A stretch of DNA of 64,000 bases from Podarcis erhardii (taxonomy: Eukaryota). Within the stretch, counting starts at the first letter, position 1. The number at the start of each line of letters is the position of its first letter. Below are positions 5,353-58,839 of this stretch, in pieces. The translations under genes were made by a program, and so were the position numbers. Where the stretch lies: NCBI GenBank assembly GCA_964252035.1, contig OZ176215.1; one strand, 5' to 3'. Below the pieces are notes generated by a model that was given only the letters and a program-made list of their open reading frames with translations, was not told the DNA's origin and ran no database searches.

Positions 5353-5720
5353 TATCGCAGGTAGCGCTGTGGTTTAAACTACAGAGCCTAGGGCTTGCTG
5401 ATCAGCTGTGGTTTAAACTACAGAGCCTAGGGCTTGCTGATCAGCTGTGGTTTAAACTACAGAGCCTAGGGCTTGCTGATCATAAGGTTGGCGGTTCGAA
5501 TCCCCGCAACGGGGTGAGCTCCCGTTGCTCGGTCCCAGCTCCTGCCAACCTAGCAGTTCGAAAGCACGTCAAAGTACAAGTAGATAAATAGGTACTAATC
5601 CAGTGGGAAGGTAAACGGCGTTTCCGTACACTGGCTCCCTCGGCCAATAAAGCAAGATGAGCACCACAACCCCAGAGTCGGTCATGACTGGACCTAATGG
5701 TCAGGGGTCCCTTTACCTTT
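5353..5720 (+). mobile_element. Sauria SINE with triplicated 39-bp 5' unit
   Basis: B box GGTTCGAATCC, cctgccaacctagcagttcgaaagc core, cctttaccttt tail; three exact 39-bp copies at 5366-5482. Confidence 0.9.
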
Positions 5721-5748
5721 TTAACCCCATATCTGCATTATTTGGCTA

Positions 5749-6122
5749 GGGGATGTGGGTGGTGCTGTGGTCTAAACCACTGAGCCTCTTGGGCTTGCCG
5801 ATCAGAAGGTAAGTGATTCGAATTCCCACGACGGCGTTAGCTCCCATTGGTCTGTCCCAGCTCCTGCCAACCTAGCAGTTTGAAAGTACACCAGTGCAAG
5901 TAGATAAATAGGTACCGCTGCAATGGGAAGGTAAACAGCTTTTCCGTGCCCTCTGGTTTCTGTCACGGTGTCCCGTTGCAGCAGAAGCGGTTTAGTCCTG
6001 CTGGCCACATGACCCAGAAAGCTGTGGACAAACGCCGGCACCCTTGGCCTGAAAGTGAGATGAGCACCACATCCCAGTCACTTTTGACTGGACTTAACAG
6101 TCCAGGGGTCCTTTACCTTTAC
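5749..6122 (+). mobile_element. Sauria SINE
   Basis: Same core and tail as the adjacent copy, more diverged. Confidence 0.88.
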
Positions 6123-13700: not shown

Positions 13701-16426
13701 CTTCTGTGGAAGCATAACAAACTTCACGCCTCTGGTTGGTCATGGTAACATAGAGCCAGATATCTGATCATGAAAAAGTAGGTAGTCCAATGTCATTTCT
13801 TCGAGGTACATGGAATTCCCCTAAAGTACAGCTAACTTGGGCCCCATAACACTGTGCATAAAAGCTTTTTCTCCCCACACCCTGCCCCAAATTCAATGAG
13901 AGAGACTAGTTGCTTCTGGCATGTAGAGCAAGACTCCAGTGCCCTGCAAAACTGTGAAGTGACTCTGTGGTCTTGTGTCAGAGGTCTGCTTGGAACACAA
14001 AAGCTTCTCAAAGATCATCTTTTTGAAAGGAACATGTAGAGGGGATTATCATTGCTGACTCAGACCCAACTGAAAGCTCAGCAAGTGGTCTCCAAAGAGG
14101 ACCGGTTCACCTATGTGTTTGTCACTTGTGGATCGCAGCATCAAGTGTGTCTTTCATGTGAGAGTTTGTCAGAACTTCCACCCAAGGAGTTCATTTGTGT
14201 TCATCTCTTTTTCAGATAGTGACATCTATAAGTGAGAAATTAAGGCATATATGTGCATGTGTGACATAGTTCAGGGGTGGGGATTTCTTTCAAATTTCAT
14301 GGTCCAGGGCCAAATTTCTTTGTGAGCAAACTTGGCATGGGGGGGGGGGGGATGCCAGTGGTGGGCAGAACCAGCGGCAAAAGTGGGCAGGCTGTATTCC
14401 ATCCATGCAAAAGTCAGTGGTTTCTACACACTTACACCTCCATATCCAGGTAAGCAAGAGGCATTGTTAGAGCACAAGGATACATTCTACCCAGGTAAAA
14501 ACCCTGAAGGTGCAGAGCAGGACATGGAGAGAGCCCTGAGGGCCACGCAGAGAGACACAGAGGACCACATTTGGCCAGTGGGCCTGAGGTTCCCCACCCC
14601 TGCTGTAGTCTTTCTCACAGAGTGTTCCAGCCACCTGATCTGCCCCCTGATCTAGGACTTTGCCCTTAAAATGCTGAGTTTGGGTGAGGAGCTCTTGGTA
14701 GGGACAGGTGAGTAGCCAGAAGTGTGGGAAGGGGGGAGGGATTACGAGACCGGAAAACTCCAAGTATTTTGAGAGTGTTGCCATTTATTTTTGGAATCCA
14801 GCCTCTGATTATGGCATGAAACTGCCGATCTTGCGATCCAACCCAGAGGATCAGATTCTCTACCAGACGGAACGCTACAATGAGGAAACCTTTGGCTATG
14901 AGGTCCCCATCAAGGAGGAAGGAGACTACGTTCTTGTGCTGAAGTTTGCTGAAGTCTATTTTGCACAGTCCCAGCAGAAGGTAAAACAAAAAAGTACTTT
15001 GTTCTGGAAGGACTCCCTTCCCATCAGTGGTTGGGTCAAGTGCCAGAGGCCTGCTGCTTTTGCCATATGAGTATGTGGGACTCAAGCATGCACACCTTTC
15101 ACGACGTGGGAGTGCTTGCCTTCACTCTTCCAGCATACAACAGAACTCATGTCTCCTCCCCCCCTCCCCGGAAATGAAGTATCCTGGAGTCACACACAGA
15201 GATCCTCTTTCGGGGGGGGGGGGCGGGGCAGGACCTATCAGCACCATTTCTGCTGGTGGAAGTCACTGTTACCAGTTGGTTAACTGACCTTTGTCATGGG
15301 AATATAGGAAGTTACTTTCTTATGACCCAGGCCATTTAGTTCATTAGCATGTACCCTGACTGGCCACAGCTCTCCTGAGCTTCAGACAGGGGCCTCTCCC
15401 AGACCACCCTGGAGGCACCATAGATTGAACCAGGAACTTTCTACATTCAAAGCAGATGCTCTACTACTGAGCCAAGACCCTTCCTATACAGTGTCATATA
15501 CAGAGATCAAAAGACAACCGTGTGTCCTTCCAGCTCTGAAATATGTTTTTGCTGCTGCTCTTTCCAGTCAGTTGTATTGACAGGTCGTGGCTGTAGAGTT
15601 GGAAGGGACCACGAGGATCATCTAGTCCAAGCCCCTGCAGTGCAGGAATCTTTTTGGGACTTGAACCCACGACCCCATGACCCTGGGGCAGCCCTCTCAC
15701 CCAACCTCCCTGGCTGCTAGAGGCCTTACCACTGAGTTCAGGCCCTTTCCCATAAAATAGAGACCTATTTTACAAGCAAAACCAAAAGTTGCTTGTCTTC
15801 TTTATTTGACCAGCCAAGGAAATTGCTTTTCTGCCAATAGATGAGTTCCAGGTCTTGGCACAAACACACTCCTCCAGCTGAGATACAAAATCAGCCAGGC
15901 AGCATCTCTCTTAGTTCAATGACTAAGAGCATCACATGTAGGCTTTTTGAGTTACACAGGATTTTTCACTGGGCAGTATGGAAAGGCAGCTACTTCCATC
16001 CTCCCTAAGAAGTTTGTGTAAACTTGAAAATTTGCATGCTGCTATGCCCATGAAAGATGTCAGTTAGGCTGCTCTCCTGGCCCTGCACAGTAGCAAGGTC
16101 AGGATGATTTTCCTGCATCGGCGTTCCTCCAATCCATAGCTTGTTGTCCTCCCATTTTTGCTCCTGATCTGACTTCTACTCTGCAAGAGGCCTCATTCCT
16201 TTTCCATATTTCTTTCCAAAGGTTTTTGATGTGCGCTTGAATGGCCATGTGGTGGTGAAGGACTTGGACATTTTCGACCGAGTCGGACACAGCACAGCGC
16301 ATGATGAGATTATTCCAATTGGCATCAAGAAAGGGAAGCTGAGCGTCCAGGGAGAGGTCTCAACTTTCACAGGGAAACTCAACATTGAGTTTGTCAAGGT
16401 AAGAAAAGGCCATTGCTCACAAGTGG

Positions 16427-27974: not shown

Positions 27975-28372
27975 ATTTTCTTGGGTTTACTTTTCTTTCT
28001 CCCAGGATGTCTGGTTTGAGGGGAAATGTTCAGAAATCTACTGGCTGGCAGTTTTAACCAGCAGTGTGTTTAAAAATAAATAAAAACAAAATTATATTGT
28101 CACTCAAAGGAACTGGCGTTTTTCTTACAAACAAATAAATAAATAAGGGACATATTTATGTCAGAGAAAATGTTCATAGCTCTCAGCTGTATGGAGCCAG
28201 AGGCTTAAACCACACTGCAGCAGCTATTGCAGGCTGGCAAAGAGACTTAATTTTTAAAACCGCATCACCACAACAATTATTACAGCATCCGAGCAACTCT
28301 GCTCCTGCCTCTGCTGAAAACTGCCCTGTTGCTCATCCATATGGTGGTGGCATCTCGTTTCTCTCTATTCTA

Positions 28373-30587
28373 TTATTAAATTTAATAACTTTATTAAATT
28401 TTTAACAAGAAAAAAGTTGCAAAACGATAAACAAAAACACAAGAAAAATACAAAAACCAAAATTTAACATAGAATAAAAAATAAAAAATAAAAATCCCTC
28501 TTTTTAATTTCTTACCGTTCCTTTACTTATTTTCCTGACTTCCTCACACCTCCCTTTTTTGTATTCCATTTAAAAATTGGTTCAGCAAATTCATACCCTC
28601 TTAATTTACCCTTAATTATTTATCCTCACATATTATAGCTTCAAATTTTCGTCTAATATCAATCCATTCTTGCAAATTCTTATTTTACCTTATTACTAGA
28701 ACCACTTCATTTCATTTCAACATCATTAACATTCAAAAATTTTACAATTCAATTTACCGTTAATTTCTTTAACCTTATCTTACCTTCAAAGCAATAAAAT
28801 TTCAAAATTTAAACCATATTTAAACTTAACTCCTTCAAACCTTTCTGCTAAAGCCAATTAATTCCTTTCCAGCACATTCTAGTATTTCATTAGTATTACA
28901 CTAATTCCACAAATAAAAAGATATATAAAAAGAAATTCTCATTCTAGTTTTATCCAACGTCCCTTCTTCCTGGTTTCGGGTAATGTCAGTCCTTTCACCA
29001 TTATATCCTGACTTCCGGAGGCGGCGCCATCGGCAATGGAGGATTCCCTCTAACTTAGAGGAAGAAAGCCCCACAGAAATCGGGTCCTACCGCCACAGTG
29101 AAGCGGGGACCCTCTCAAAACCGCAGGCGGGTGAAGCCTGCGACCGTGGGACTCGGTGGGCACCTTTTGCGCCCCCCCCCGATCGGCAAAGGAACCCTGC
29201 AAAGGGCTCCGGAGCGGGGCGCGGTGCTGAGGGTCAATCGCTACTTCTGCGGAACGAAGCTGCACAGCTGATGCCGGAGAGCGCTGTCCTCTTTCCTGTG
29301 ACAATTTGACTTTTAAACAACAACCCGTGAGTAGGACAATTGAAAGATTGGGAGATCAAAGGAATCGCTCCTTTGATCAAAGGAACAAACTTGAATTTGG
29401 CACTGAAGCGGGAAGGTGTAAACAGGAAGTCCGCCTTCCGCTTTTTGTAAATAGACTGAAGCAAAGATCTTGCAAGCTAAATAGCCTGGAAAATTGATTC
29501 TAAGATTGAAATTTCCTGCATCTATAACCATCAAAACCCCCTTGACAGCAGGAGAAAAGGGGGAAAGAAATTTTGACCTCTTAATCCTGCAGAGAGAGCG
29601 AAAGAATATAAGCTTCCATCGTCCTAAACCTGGGGACGGGACGTCAGGTCGGAAATGGTTGGAGATGTCCATTAATTGAAAACGGAACACTTTTGACAGA
29701 TAGAAACAAAAGAGAAACAAAATAATTCTAATGCTGCTTTCTGCTTGTTTGTATTGTACTGTAAGGAAACAAAGTATCTGAAAATCGAAAGTAAATTTCC
29801 CTTTGTTGGATACATTTTAAAGATGGACGTTAAATAGAAACTGTGTCCCTAGAGGGAGCTTGCCAGCGTGTTTGCTGTAATTCACAGGGAAGATATAATA
29901 GCTGTGAAAATTAGACCGTGGGACCAGCTATTTGACCTTGAACAGAAATGAACAGGGAGGAAGTTTTACTTTCTGCCCTTGGCAAAATAAATGCTATGCT
30001 GCAGCAGTTGGATGAGAAAGTGACTTTGATGAATGAAAAGTTGGATTTTAAATCTGCTGCAGCTAGTAAATATGAACTAACAGGAAACGAAGTTAAAGAA
30101 ATCTTACAACAACCAATCCAGGAAACTAGTTTAATAAGGCAAGTCCAAGGGCAGATGAAGATGGAAGAGGTTGCGATTGCACCTCAAAAGATACAGAGAC
30201 TCAAAATCCCACACGACCAAAAGCTGCAACATTGGAAGATTGAACTTGGAGAATATTTGCAAGACTCTGGAGTTAAGGAAGTTCTTAGCTCTGGTGGGAC
30301 TGTGAAACAAGTTGATGATTATTTCTGGAACAACTACCTTTTGGATTATAAATTAAACATAGGGGAGTGGATTAGCGGAGAATGGGACAACCTGATGAAA
30401 GAAAATGGAGAATACTACTGTATGGAATTCCCCGGAGACTCACTCCCCAAGGAGAAAGGGAAGAAACTACGTAAGAACCCAACAAGGGATAAGGATGTGT
30501 GCAAGTACAAACAGGAACAAGAAAACCTGCAGAGGGGGCATAGAAGGGACTTGAGAGCCTCAGATATTAGAACACCAGATTGATGGA
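28373..30587. mobile_element. 2.2-kb non-LTR retro-insertion with internal inversion (L1-dependent, single-ORF, HAL1-like architecture)
   Basis: Perfect 19-bp TSD ctcgtttctctctattcta (28354-28372 and 30588-30606). The minus-strand part 29009-28373 ends in AATAAA plus an AT-rich tail. The plus-strand part starts gacttccggaggcggcgccat at about 29010 and contains a 211-codon ORF. Confidence 0.85.
29948..30583 (+). CDS. Element-encoded ORF, 211 aa, N-terminal coiled-coil-like, function unknown
   Basis: True ATG with G at -3; no stop for 211 codons; heptad-like LGKINAMLQQLDEKVTLMNEKLD; aromatic-rich middle (HWKIELGEYL, YFWNNYLLDY, GEW). No L1 ORF1 RRM or ORF2 motif recognised. Confidence 0.55.
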   Translation: MNREEVLLSALGKINAMLQQLDEKVTLMNEKLDFKSAAASKYELTGNEVKEILQQPIQETSLIRQVQGQMKMEEVAIAPQKIQRLKIPHDQKLQHWKIELGEYLQDSGVKEVLSSGGTVKQVDDYFWNNYLLDYKLNIGEWISGEWDNLMKENGEYYCMEFPGDSLPKEKGKKLRKNPTRDKDVCKYKQEQENLQRGHRRDLRASDIRTPD

Positions 30588-31584
30588 CTCGTTTCTCTCT
30601 ATTCTAGTGGCTTGTGCATTTAAACTTTCCTGATCCTGAGTGGCTCATGTGTGAGTTGGGAGTCCTATTCCTCCACATCAAATCCCATTCTGTGAATGGG
30701 TGCAAGCATACATTTAGTAAATAGAGGGTCCATTTTTTAAAAAGGGGAAATGTATTTTGTAGAGAGTATGTGATAATAAAGCCGCAGCTGGCTGAATTCT
30801 GTTGTGTCACCTTAGATTGGGAAATGGATTAGACAGTACCCAAAGCATAGGAAAAGCAGAGAAGTCCATTCTTACCTGTCCCTTAAATCTTGAATTGGCC
30901 CAGTGGCTGGGCCTTGTCCAATTCTCTCTCCTGTCTTGTGCTAAGGCCCTGGGCATGATCAATGTGTGATTCATCATCCCCTCTTCGGAAATATTTATTT
31001 TGTTATGCACTAGAGTAGAATAGTCACATAACAGAGCCCGATTTAAAGTGGGCTTCACCAGCACCATAATTTTATTTCTAGCTTCATTTTTTAAGAGAAA
31101 AAGCAAAAGATGGAAGGTGAAACATTCTTTTTATAAAAAAAAAAACCCAAAACACCCCTGGCTGCCATGTCATAGGGAGGGTGAGATGTGAGTGCCCAGT
31201 CTGCAGTGACTGAAAGCCAGTGTTGGTATCATAGTGTGCATAGTTTTTTACTTCAACCATTATACCACATGGAGAAGAGAAATCTGCTGCTGCCCTGCTG
31301 CTATGTGCTGCCGTAGATGACTGTCGGTGGGTTCTTGGTGGTGGCCCAGAAACAGCCTGCCTGGCCGGAGTTTGTAGCCCTCCAAGCCACTCTGGTCTTG
31401 TCTGAGCTGTGCCGCGTTGCCTTACCAGGCAGAGTAGCCGGGAGTAAAAGGACACAAAAATGTGCATGAAGCTTGCACGTGCTGATTTGCATGTGTGGAC
31501 GCAAACGTGGAAACAATGAGTCACAATGAAATAGATTTTATCCTAGTGGGGAATACACCTAATCCGTCTTGCCATAGCAAAAGA

Positions 31585-31739: not shown

Positions 31740-32600
31740 CTGAATGGGTAGTTCCAGGGCCCCTTTCTGGTCCGCTTTTTTCAGAACAGAGGACTGTCCT
31801 CTACGCGCGGCTATCTTTCCCTATGAAGCATTCAGCTGCGGAGGAGCATATTCCTGCAACGTTTCGGTTTCGCTGCCTAAAATCCGCCTTACGGAGATTT
31901 GCCTGCCCGGTCCAGATGCGCCCCAAACCGCTTCGCGCCGCGACTCCCTTCCCAAAACCGCAACATCCCCTCCGCTGTCCGAGGAACTTCCTACCGGAAT
32001 GCGCATGCGCGCGGCGTCCTTCGCCCCACCCACCATCCCTGCCTCCCCCCAACGTGCCTCCTTTGGCTCCGCCCGCCTCGACCTCCGTCAACGGCGTCTT
32101 CCTGGCCCCGCCCCCTCGCTCCCATAGCTACGAAAGGAGGCGGCGGCGGAGGTGGTAGCCATCTTGGCGGCGGCGGCGGCGGCGGCGGGCCCGACGGGGC
32201 GATGAGCGGCTCGAAGCCCAGGGTGGCGTCGGGGGCCGGCGGGGCGCTGAGCCGCTTGCGAGGCCGGAGAGGCTCCGGAGACGCGTCGCCCGCGGTCGTG
32301 GCTCCTCTGAGGGCCGCCGTGTTGCCCCGCACCGAGGCGGAGCTGCTGGCTCTGGACGCGGTCCGGCCCGAGCACGTCCTGGGGCTCAGCCGCGTCACTG
32401 AGAGTGAGTAGCAGGGGGGCGAGGAGGAGCAGGGAGGAGGAGGCCCCCGGGCGAACCCCGACATTGTGTGTGCCGAGCCCGCTCTGCACCCCGGTATCGA
32501 CTCCCCAGAGCCCCCACCCCAGTTCGTGGATTCACTTAGGTGGGCACCCATGTATCTGCCCTGCCCCTCCTCTCCGTAGGCCAGGGGAATTGGGAGGGGT
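31740..32600 (+). promoter_or_regulatory. UNC119B CpG-island promoter and 5'UTR
   Basis: CpG-rich; NRF1-consensus TGCGCATGCGCG at 32000-32011; YY1-like GCCATCTT at 32158-32165; (GGC)7 at 32166-32186. Confidence 0.75.
32202..32403 (+). CDS. UNC119B: UNC119B coding exon 1
   Basis: [11 protein letters not shown]...LSRVTE; donor A|GTGAGT at 32404. Confidence 0.92.
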
Positions 32601-35600
32601 GGTCCTCACGCTCCCCCCAAAACCTTCTCTTGCCTCTGAAGGTTGCCCCTTCTATGGACCCTTCTGGGCACCCCAACATCGATTATGCCTTTGCTCTGAA
32701 TACAGTGATACCTCAGGTTACATATGCTTCAGGTTACATACGCTTCAGGTTATAGACTCCGCTAACCCAGAAATCGTGCTTCAGGTTAAGAACTTTGCTT
32801 CAGGATAAGAACAGAAATCGTGCTCCGGCGGCGCGGCAGCAGCAGGAGGCCCCATTAGCTAAAGTGGTGCTTCAGGTTAAGAACAGTTTCAGGTTAAGAA
32901 CGGACCTCCGGAACAAATTAAGTACTTAACCCGAGGTACCACAGTAGTCATGTTCTTTTTCCAATCAGGGCGCAGGAAATTGGGAGCGGCGGAGCACATT
33001 CTCCCTTTACACGCCCGCTAGCATTTTGCTCGGAAGAAACCTCCCTTTAATGGCCCCACCGGCTAGACCCATAAACGTGGGCCCCCAAGTATCTATTAGG
33101 TTTCCATTTCCTTCCCGTCCCTGAGCGCAGGAAATTTGTGGGAGACAGAGCATGCACCCTGCTTTCTTGTTTCACCCGTTGAAAAGTCAAAAAAATCTAT
33201 CCCCCTATTTGCAACTAAGGGAAACTCAGAATATATATATTTAACTACACAGGGCTTTGTCTAGCTCCAGCTGTAAGGCTGACTCAAAGAAAGATTCATT
33301 CATTCATTTAAAGAATTGATACGGATAAATTCTCACTCCTGGCTACCCCTGAAATTGGTAAACCCTGAGTACACCAGCATCAGCTTTCTGTGTTGCTGCT
33401 GCCCCCCACTTCATGTGTACAACCTCTCTGCTTACTTATCAACTAGCTAGTCCCTTTTTCTGTCAGAATAACTCCACCAAGGATGCAAAAATCTGGGAGC
33501 CCCAAGGCACCCTAGCACCACCCTGCCACATATTAGTGTATCAGGTACAGTACTCTGAAGAGCAGTTCCATTCCCCACCCCACCCCCTTTGAATAGTCTC
33601 TTTACTCCCTCTTAATACAGTACTTTAAATTAACAAGATGGTAATAGCTTCCCTATGCTTTTCTACTTGCAGAACTGTGAGCACACCTGAAAGTCTTCAC
33701 TGCAGTCATAATTCTGAATAACTTCTTTTCTTTCTGCCGTCAGTCCTTTCTGGCTTAGAATGACTTTCTCTCTGCAGCCTGCCTACAATTGTGGAAATAC
33801 AGGGTTGCCCAGGCTTGTATTTAACAACTCATGTAATAACCATAGGGTGTTCCAGTATAACACTAATCAATGTGTTCTGTCAGTGCAAGAATTTCCACTT
33901 GTGCATCAGAACTTCCCTACTTCTCTCCTCTGCACCCCCCTCCTAGCACAACCCCTAAATCTGTTCCTTCAGAGTAGATATGGTGAAAGCATAGGGAGAT
34001 GGAGAGGGAATTCTGTGGTTTAAACAGAAATCCTTGCGCTGATGTAATGCATTCAATGGGTTCCACTCCATACCAGGAATTTCCTGCAGGCCAATGACCA
34101 GCCTGTTCCTCCTCTGAGTCCATTGATTGATTGATTGATTGCATTTATACCCCACCTCAAGGAGCTCAAGGTGACATTTTATCCTCACAACAATCCTAGA
34201 GGTAGGTTAGGCTGAGAGTGAGTTACTGGCCAAAGGTGAGCTTCACAGCTGAGTGGGGATTTGAACCCTGGTCTCCCAGGTCCTATTCCAACACCCTAAC
34301 CACAACACCACACTCTGGCTCTCTGTGTCTTATACTTTTCTCCACAACCAGTATGATAAGACAGAGGGCTGGTGGAGAAGGGACATTGGAAGCTCCTCGG
34401 TCAGACAATAGGTCCATCTAACTCAGTATTGTGCACCCTGGCATGTTGCTCTATCCTTCCTTCCTTCAATTAGCCTGGGCAAGGAAAGGCAGCACTAGCT
34501 TGTCAAGTGGCTAGAAGCCTGTGTTTTTGTGCATGCTTTATAGGAAGCTAGTACTTGGGGGTGGGCAGGGAGCAGGCTAGTAACATTGGTGGGCTTATTT
34601 GCAGTGTTGTCGCAATATCTACTCGCCTTTCTTTTATATACAGGCGGCAATCATTTCATGCAGGTGTTCCATTCCTGGCCCCCAAATCCATCGATAGAGC
34701 ACATTTAAGTGTGCCCAGATCCTGTTCTGCCTTCTTGCAGATCCAAAAGGACCTGTGTGTCAGTGATCACACGTCAATTGGACTCACCTAAAATGGTGAC
34801 CGCCTGTATATAAAAATGAGGTCCTTGGGTTTATGTAAGCATGAAGCTTTATTTCTATCAGGACAGACCCATCAGATTGGCAGTAGACCTCCAAGGCTTT
34901 GGGCTGCAATGGCTCTTCCCAGCCCCGAAGCCCAAGATCTCTTTACCTCTCTTGTTTTTCCCAAATGGTAATCCCCGACATGGGACTTCTCAGGTTTCCT
35001 TTTCCTTTGTCTCCTAGACTATCTCTGCCGACCAGAGGACAACTTTTACAATATTGATTTCACCAAGTTCAAGATCAGGGACCTGGAGACAGGGACGGTG
35101 CTATTTGAAATTGCCAAACCTTCAGCTTTAGGTAAGTGGGCCCTGAAGAAGAAAAAATAGAGAAAGTGAGAGCGTGTACATAAAGCCTAAGGTCCGGTCT
35201 CCGTCTAGAAATTGCTGGGATTTCAGAATCTAAATAGTTTCTTCTAAAGAATTGAATGATTTCTGCAATTCCACCTCTTTTTCTCCTTCCCTCCCCCCCT
35301 TCTGACATTAAAGTTCCCAACAAATATTTTAAAGGAGAAGTTGGCAAATTTTCCATAGGGATTAGGAAGGCAACTTAATAACTTTTATATAAGCTACTCT
35401 GCGTGGCAATATTGCTCACCACTAATATAGACAGGCTGGTGGGAGTTGTAGTCCAAAGCATCTGGCAGGCACCAGGTTGGGGAAAGGCTTCATTACATTT
35501 TCTCTTGCATGCAGTATATGGCACAATAGGGTCCTGATACTGCTGTATCTAAATACCACCAGCTTTGCCCACCCTGCAGTTCAGCCCAGCTGAACTAAAT

Positions 35601-43928: not shown

Positions 43929-58839
<14,911 letters not shown>

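Follow-up and report, generated by a model that had tools for sequence, protein, structure and literature searches.

The described elements closest to the locus treated here are the HAL1 elements of mammals and the clade-1 L1 families of lizards. In the account for which PMC5753468 cites Smit (1999) and Bao and Jurka (2010), HAL1 elements are mammalian half-L1s, that is, non-autonomous derivatives of L1. The clade-1 L1 families of lizards have a common conserved 5' extremity, GACTTCCGGTG-N8-ATGGCG, and long 5' untranslated regions (5'UTRs) of 45.2% GC with two CpG islands 300-400 bp apart, and T-rich, repetitive 3'UTRs have also been described for lizard L1 (Boissinot and Sookdeo 2016, PMC5381506). 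Every vertebrate L1 open reading frame 1 (ORF1) examined in published work has a coiled coil (CC), an RNA recognition motif (RRM) as well as a C-terminal domain (CTD). We analyzed a single stretch of 64,000 nucleotides from the lacertid lizard Podarcis erhardii (contig OZ176215.1 of assembly GCA_964252035.1; the window hereafter), in which an insertion of about 2.2 kb carries an L1-type 5' end together with one ORF for a protein without an RRM. This insertion is probably young and full-length, a copy of a non-autonomous, L1-derived retroposon from lacertids that is of the HAL1 (half-L1) type, lacks ORF2 and encodes this RRM-less protein.

Boundaries, inverted layout and L1-like ends of the insertion

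The insert lies between two copies of a 19-bp target-site duplication (TSD), CTCGTTTCTCTCTATTCTA, which are identical at all 19 positions and have differing bases on their flanks. No other isolated 19-mer pair like it occurs in the window, where the remaining repeated 19-mers all lie inside longer dispersed repeats or a CA microsatellite. The 2215 bp between the two copies (28373-30587) fall into halves of opposite orientation, of which the 5' part, on the plus strand, takes up 1578 bp (29010-30587) and the 3' part, on the minus strand, 637 bp. The base composition switches strand at 29009/29010, with a C-poor sense strand to the left and an L1 head to the right, and this switch coincides exactly with the first base of GACTTCCGG; microhomology is not present at the joint. 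Along the minus strand one meets first a TSD copy, then the inverted 5' segment, after it the direct 3' segment with its polyadenylation signal, and finally the second TSD copy; 4 bases lie between the stop codon of the ORF and the right TSD. The two halves were read separately.

This layout matches the expectation for L1 twin priming, in which L1 reverse transcription is reportedly primed from both nicked strands. Under twin priming, positions 30587 and 29009 would be neighbors in the RNA, and the internal joint would represent the RNA 5' end. Twin-priming L1 insertions are likewise said to have one TSD pair, with the inverted 5' segment and the direct 3' segment adjoining opposite copies of it; the present insertion is unlike them in that its inverted cDNA extends to the first base of the RNA, which makes it a full-length copy.

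The 5' part starts with GACTTCCGGAGGCGGCGCCATCGGC, its very first bases being GACTTCCGGAG. The motif GACTTCCGG at its head occurs once in the 64-kb window, with 0.13 occurrences expected, and six bases past it lies a CGCCAT (29025-29030), the reverse complement of the consensus block ATGGCG. The 5'UTR has a GC content of 46.8%, 39 CpG dinucleotides and six short upstream ORFs; its CpG-rich patches, at ~29010-29310 and ~29560-29710, are about 300 bp apart, and the first 300 bp have 59-67% GC and a CpG observed/expected ratio of 0.7-1.0. Because GACTTCCGG at the first base is the published clade-1 extremity, and the GC content and CpG layout of the 5'UTR agree with those of clade-1 L1, the element is by its sequence an L1 derivative whose 5' end and promoter come from L1. 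By the same features the inverted cDNA evidently got to the true start of the RNA, giving a full-length copy.

The 3' part has 26% GC, and its sense strand consists of 37% A, 36% T and 5.3% C. It is non-coding, with many stops in all three frames, and has T-rich short repeats near its end, which fits the 3'UTRs described for lizard L1. Its only polyadenylation signal, an AATAAA that runs from 28395 to 28390 on the minus strand, is found at position 615 of the 637, and the terminal 17 nt beyond it, GTTATTAAATTTAATAA, comprise 8 A, 8 T and 1 G and directly abut the TSD. As a separate point, APOBEC editing of the cDNA was considered as an explanation for the low C content of the 3' part and was rejected by reasoning only, as it would deplete G rather than C on the sense strand.

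A preliminary description, made from the letters of this stretch, had proposed a TSD-flanked retroposed unit with L1 twin-priming geometry, and the TSD pair, the strand switch and the placement of the AATAAA bear this out. Its perfect 19-bp repeat enclosing 2215 bp and its GC-rich head with a CGCCAT were likewise recovered, and so were the AATAAA and AT-rich end of the left 637 bp, with the qualification that this end is not poly(A). It had further suggested a possibly undescribed retroelement family; such a family would not be unrelated to L1, since the 5' extremity and 5'UTR features are those of lizard clade-1 L1.

Comparison with a clade-1 L1 such as L1_AC of Anolis shows the extent of the likeness. 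Both have the GACTTCCGG extremity, a long 5'UTR of ~45% GC with two CpG patches, an A-rich sense strand, a T-rich repetitive 3'UTR ending in AATAAA, and a TSD. In contrast to such an L1, the element measures 2.2 kb rather than about 6 kb, has no ORF2 in this copy, encodes an ORF without RRM or CTD, lacks a poly(A) tail, and contains the ATGGCG block only in the form of its reverse complement CGCCAT.

The encoded protein and its family

The insert has an intact ORF of 211 codons, which begins with ATG, ends with a TGA at 30581 and is A-rich and C-poor, as in L1. When the insert was shuffled 2000 times, the longest ORF was always shorter than this one (at most 177 codons, 71 on average), and the ORF is real. 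Among the other ORFs of the insert none exceeds 135 aa, and nothing in the insert resembles an endonuclease or reverse transcriptase.

Sequence searches recovered a small family of relatives of this protein. A word search yielded one relative and a HMMER scan, which was exhaustive over the 1.84 billion cluster representatives of a 15-billion-protein library, yielded two; two profile rounds brought the number to six (P0001-P0006), along with one partial fragment. The lengths of the six run from 174 to 206 aa and their identities with the window protein from 28 to 54%, with E-values down to 1e-97. Half of them (P0002, P0003 and P0004) are entered as 'Hypothetical predicted protein' of Podarcis lilfordi (CAI7935145.1, CAI5777045.1 and CAI5765718.1), and are located in that species on one scaffold of 47 kb and two sequences of chromosome size; the other three come from Logan contigs of ~1 kb. 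The fragment (P0007; E-value 0.23) belongs to a partial prediction from a fourth sequence of P. lilfordi, a contig of 7.6 kb. In this 251-aa partial model (CAI7935470.1 / CAI7935471.1) a 60-residue piece of the family stands between unrelated sequence; apparently the prediction was spliced across a degenerate element copy. The HMMER scan of the 1.84 billion representatives revealed no relatives outside the lacertid family; because it drew in none from any other vertebrate, the protein is, as far as such a search can indicate, not a conserved vertebrate host gene. Within the window, neither BLASTN nor TBLASTN with the element and all its relatives detected a second copy, and a scan of the JGI metagenomes for family loci gave 75 pattern matches, none of which was real.

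The complete members begin in the same region, stop at the same residue and share a near-invariant C-terminus, RDLRASDIR-(T/L)-P-(D/G). Mean pairwise identity varies along the chain: it stands at 53% for residues 1-35, falls to about 34-37% in the middle and reaches 75% in the final 21 residues (71/5000 in a permutation test). In a substitution-only simulation that started from the window ORF, ~0.03-0.2% of the frames were still open at 44-59% amino acid identity, and five relatives at 30-54% identity retain the start region and the stop. These observations suggest that the protein has been kept by selection across deep sublineages.

No member of the family matches Pfam, inclusive of the L1 ORF1 model (Transposase_22), at E-values up to 10 (up to 1 for P0006 and P0007), and NCBIfam gave no match for the two members scanned; the scans of both collections returned only sub-threshold chance matches. 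The ESM Atlas, queried with the whole protein and with residues 1-110, gave no usable match. In the AlphaFold2 models an N-terminal helix spanning residues 3-52 is predicted with a predicted local distance difference test (pLDDT) score of about 70-77, the remainder scores under 50, and the models contain no beta-rich domain. Hydrophobic residues occupy positions 7, 11, 14, 18, 21, 25, 28 and 32 of this helix, in a clean 3-4 repeat of about four heptads. Further along the chain, residues 121-165 form an acidic, aromatic-rich block (10 D/E and 10 W/Y/F), which is followed by a basic segment at residues 166-211 (15 K/R, isoelectric point 10.1) whose tail ends in the family motif RDLRASDIRTPD.

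The window protein thus departs from the composition published for vertebrate L1 ORF1, as an RRM and CTD signal is absent from every family member. Its likeness to L1 ORF1p consists of an N-terminal α-helix with a heptad pattern, a basic region that may bind RNA, and its place as the first ORF behind an L1 5'UTR. Unlike ORF1p, it has a predicted CC of only about four heptads and no predicted beta-rich RRM, and it shows no sequence similarity to ORF1p models or solved structures. The N-terminal helix may derive from the CC of ORF1.

With respect to the coding capacity, the preliminary description had spoken of an intact single ORF without a reverse transcriptase in this copy, and of a protein of unrecognised family without the L1 ORF1 RRM signature. 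All of this agrees with the present results: there is no Pfam match in any member, Transposase_22 and a beta-rich domain included in what is missing, and the family is small and seen only in lacertid data. Its reading of the TGA at 30581 as a copy-specific mutation in an ORF of ~236 codons does not stand. Because all five complete relatives, down to 30% identity, terminate at the same residue, this TGA is the native stop and the protein one of ~200 aa; the conserved stop position rules out a read-through protein of 236 aa. The open frame claimed across the inversion joint is present as 22 open codons (DIMVKGLTLPETRKKGRWIKLE, with a stop at 28941-28939), but is no more than expected by chance and unremarkable, because another frame of the same stretch runs open for 35 codons. 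The 22-aa run, sought as the C-terminal tip of ORF2, had no match in the PDB, and the 35-aa run gave only chance matches to designed trefoil proteins in the same database.

Placed beside HAL1, the element is alike in being L1-derived, in having a promoter-bearing 5' end and one ORF, in the absence of ORF2 from this copy, in its presumed use of ORF2p in trans, and in apparently persisting as a family with its ORF kept open. It differs in its host, a lacertid lizard and not a mammal, and in its product, which is a ~200-aa protein without a detectable RRM, CTD or Transposase_22 match, while HAL1 encodes a recognisable ORF1p. The likeness to HAL1 is best described as that of a single-ORF, putatively ORF2-less L1 derivative, and not as that of an ORF1-only element. 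No HAL1-like family has been described from squamates in the literature that we searched.

Proposed origin and competing explanations

Under the explanation that we favor, that of an ORF2-less retroposon of the HAL1 type, the parent would have been a collinear RNA of ~2.2 kb that started at an internal L1 clade-1 promoter, with GACTTCCGG at +1. It would have contained a 938-nt L1-type 5'UTR, one ORF for a ~200-aa protein and a ~0.6-kb A/T-rich, C-poor 3'UTR with an AATAAA, and neither ORF2 nor any other source of reverse transcriptase. ORF2p would have come in trans from a co-resident autonomous L1, and target-primed reverse transcription would have produced the 19-bp TSD. The other nicked strand would have primed a second cDNA at a point 4 nt beyond the stop codon, from which the RNA was copied as far as its true 5' end; in the product of such twin priming the 1578 nt of the 5' part would stand inverted to the 637 nt of the 3' part. 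Most likely the protein would coat or escort the RNA that encodes it, as a substitute for ORF1p. The short N-terminal CC would provide for self-association and the basic C-terminal tail for RNA binding; such a role would explain the retention of the protein.

The copy appears to be young, because its TSDs are identical at 19/19 positions, its CpG content is intact and its ORF is open. The inversion separates the promoter and ORF from the 3' end of the family, and the copy is thereby likely to be a dead end as regards transposition. Production of the protein could continue, in which case the transcript would run into the flank toward an AATAAA at 30775.

A similar copy could have been left by a longer, possibly autonomous L1-like element that lost its ORF2 when the twin-priming cDNAs were joined over a gap of several kb, the size of 2.2 kb then being accidental. 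Such a parent would suit the L1-like character of both ends, the absence of microhomology where 30587 and 29009 are joined, and the fact that only one copy is seen. We nevertheless regard it as unlikely, given that the ORF is not an L1 ORF1 and that the family has no RRM or CTD signal, so that a parent with this ORF would already be a derivative. Furthermore, twin-priming joints reportedly lose or duplicate, as a rule, only a few to some hundred bases. Alternatively, the insertion might be a processed retrocopy made from the mRNA of a lineage-specific host gene or from a chimeric transcript driven by an L1 promoter, which was mobilised once by L1 and founded no self-propagating family. The mRNA-like order of 5'UTR, ORF and 3'UTR with AATAAA, together with the TSD, would be expected of such a retrocopy, and the relatives are indeed annotated as ordinary hypothetical genes in P. 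lilfordi. However, the first base of the RNA is the L1 clade-1 extremity, with an L1-type 5'UTR behind it, and therefore an ordinary host-mRNA retrocopy is largely removed. The base composition is also A-rich and C-poor like that of L1, no orthologues from other vertebrates are found within the 15-billion-protein library, and the relatives, paralogues of deep divergence whose ends coincide, are spread over several chromosomes or scaffolds, all of which makes a single mobilised transcript a very improbable source.

The timing of the inversion is a further matter, as sequence alone cannot tell when it took place, and the inverted layout might have arisen after integration, either by a later local inversion of a collinear insertion or by two events at one site. 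A later inversion would need one breakpoint exactly at the boundary between element and TSD (30587/30588), and another that brought base 29010, where the RNA starts, next to the beginning of the 3' part, without the loss of any TSD base. This is an improbable outcome for a random inversion and the one that twin priming precisely predicts; two separate events, on the other hand, would not have one TSD pair in common. An origin of the layout after integration is hence barely credible.

The HAL1-type explanation has to be held against several observations that do not favor it. Despite the perfect TSDs the copy has no poly(A) tail and ends in 17 nt in which A and T are mixed, and the nick site of the first strand, 5'-TATTCTA/G on the plus strand, is T-rich without being the classic TTTT/A. 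The extreme C deficit of the 3' part does not fit it either. With regard to the protein, its homology to L1 ORF1p is not detected by Pfam or by a profile search of the PDB, the latter, made with the family profile, having given no L1 ORF1p structure and nothing else of relevance. AlphaFold2, run with 3 or 7 sequences, gave a pLDDT of 40 both times, to which the N-terminal helix is the only exception, and a trimer prediction with three copies of residues 1-60 scored 0.30 against a mark of 0.32, which speaks neither for nor against self-association. The relatives, moreover, stem from ORF callers and protein collections, which list intact frames only. Finally, we infer both the collinearity of the parent and its ORF2-less state from this one copy.

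To our knowledge, elements that keep a protein and borrow the L1 reverse transcriptase are known only in the form of mammalian HAL1, and there with a normal ORF1p. The lacertid family keeps an L1 promoter but has a much smaller, RRM-less protein that is open across 28-54% identity. This raises the question of the minimal protein that an L1-dependent RNA needs in order to be copied in trans, and that of whether autonomous L1s, which are present beside them in lizards at low copy number, are aided or impeded by such proteins. A bolder and rather doubtful proposal is that the protein is not a decayed ORF1p at all, but a distinct retroelement-encoded factor, selected for tens of millions of years in several deep lacertid lineages of ORF2-less L1 parasites. 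If this were true, it would be a factor of a new kind, acting as an escort of RNA, a hijacker of ORF2p or an antagonist of L1, and the family would be the first protein-coding L1 parasite described outside mammals. Independently of the protein, a full-length twin-priming inversion in a reptile suggests a side-reaction of L1 integration that is common to mammals and reptiles. The locus itself is ordinary, and it is the family that is of moderate interest.

Features of the insertion and its surroundings

The coordinates of the insertion are collected in Table 1. The window was also searched for L1 coding sequence elsewhere, and a Pfam scan of ten other long ORFs detected no L1 ORF1 or ORF2.

Table 1. 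Coordinates of the insertion and of its component features in the window
Feature	Position	Strand	Basis or remark
TSD, left copy	28354-28372	.	Identical to 30588-30606; flanking bases differ
3' part of the element, non-coding	28373-29009	-	26% GC, 5.3% C, T-rich repeats
A/T terminal stretch, no homopolymeric A tail	28373-28389	-	Abuts TSD
AATAAA polyadenylation signal	28390-28395	-	Sole one in the 3' part
Short open run past the joint, 22 sense codons and stop, judged meaningless	28939-29009	-	Other frame open for 35 codons
GACTTCCGG, putative first bases of the parent RNA; lizard clade-1 L1 extremity, ETS-type site	29010-29018	+	Single occurrence; PMC5381506 consensus
L1-type 5'UTR, 938 nt	29010-29947	+	GC content and two CpG patches as in clade-1 L1
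Intact ORF, 211 aa with native TGA; predicted N-terminal helix, variable middle, acidic aromatic block, basic tail	29948-30583	+	Shuffles, relatives
Final 4 bases in the inverted 5' part; under twin priming, the site at which the second cDNA would be primed internally	30584-30587	+	Geometry only
TSD, right copy	30588-30606	.	Identical to 28354-28372

To the right of the insertion, at a distance of 1.4 kb, lies an island of 74.6% GC (32000-32499). A plus-strand ORF at 31899-32408 overlaps it, and residues 144-169 of this ORF match residues 27-52 of UNC119B (PDB 9odx_A, E-value 6e-4). By this match the region 31899-32499 is probably the promoter and first coding exon of the host UNC119B gene. 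The half of the retroposon that holds the promoter and ORF points toward this candidate exon, which is about 1.3 kb downstream.

Several dispersed repeats were noted in the remainder of the window. A tRNA-like sequence at 15410-15481 on the minus strand is just at the Rfam gathering score (29.6 bits), and the segment that holds it has a 75%-identical copy at 48048-48195; the two are probably heads of a tRNA-derived short interspersed element (SINE). An interspersed repeat of about 200-380 bp is present in at least 4 copies that are 70-83% identical and occur in both orientations (5444-6121, 44651-45007, 53776-53922 and 55563-55933). Another repeat family, with identities of 81-90%, is found at 32699-32946, 44454-44652 and 45320-45690; it adjoins the GC island, and contains an inverted pair at 45321-45437 and 45575-45690.

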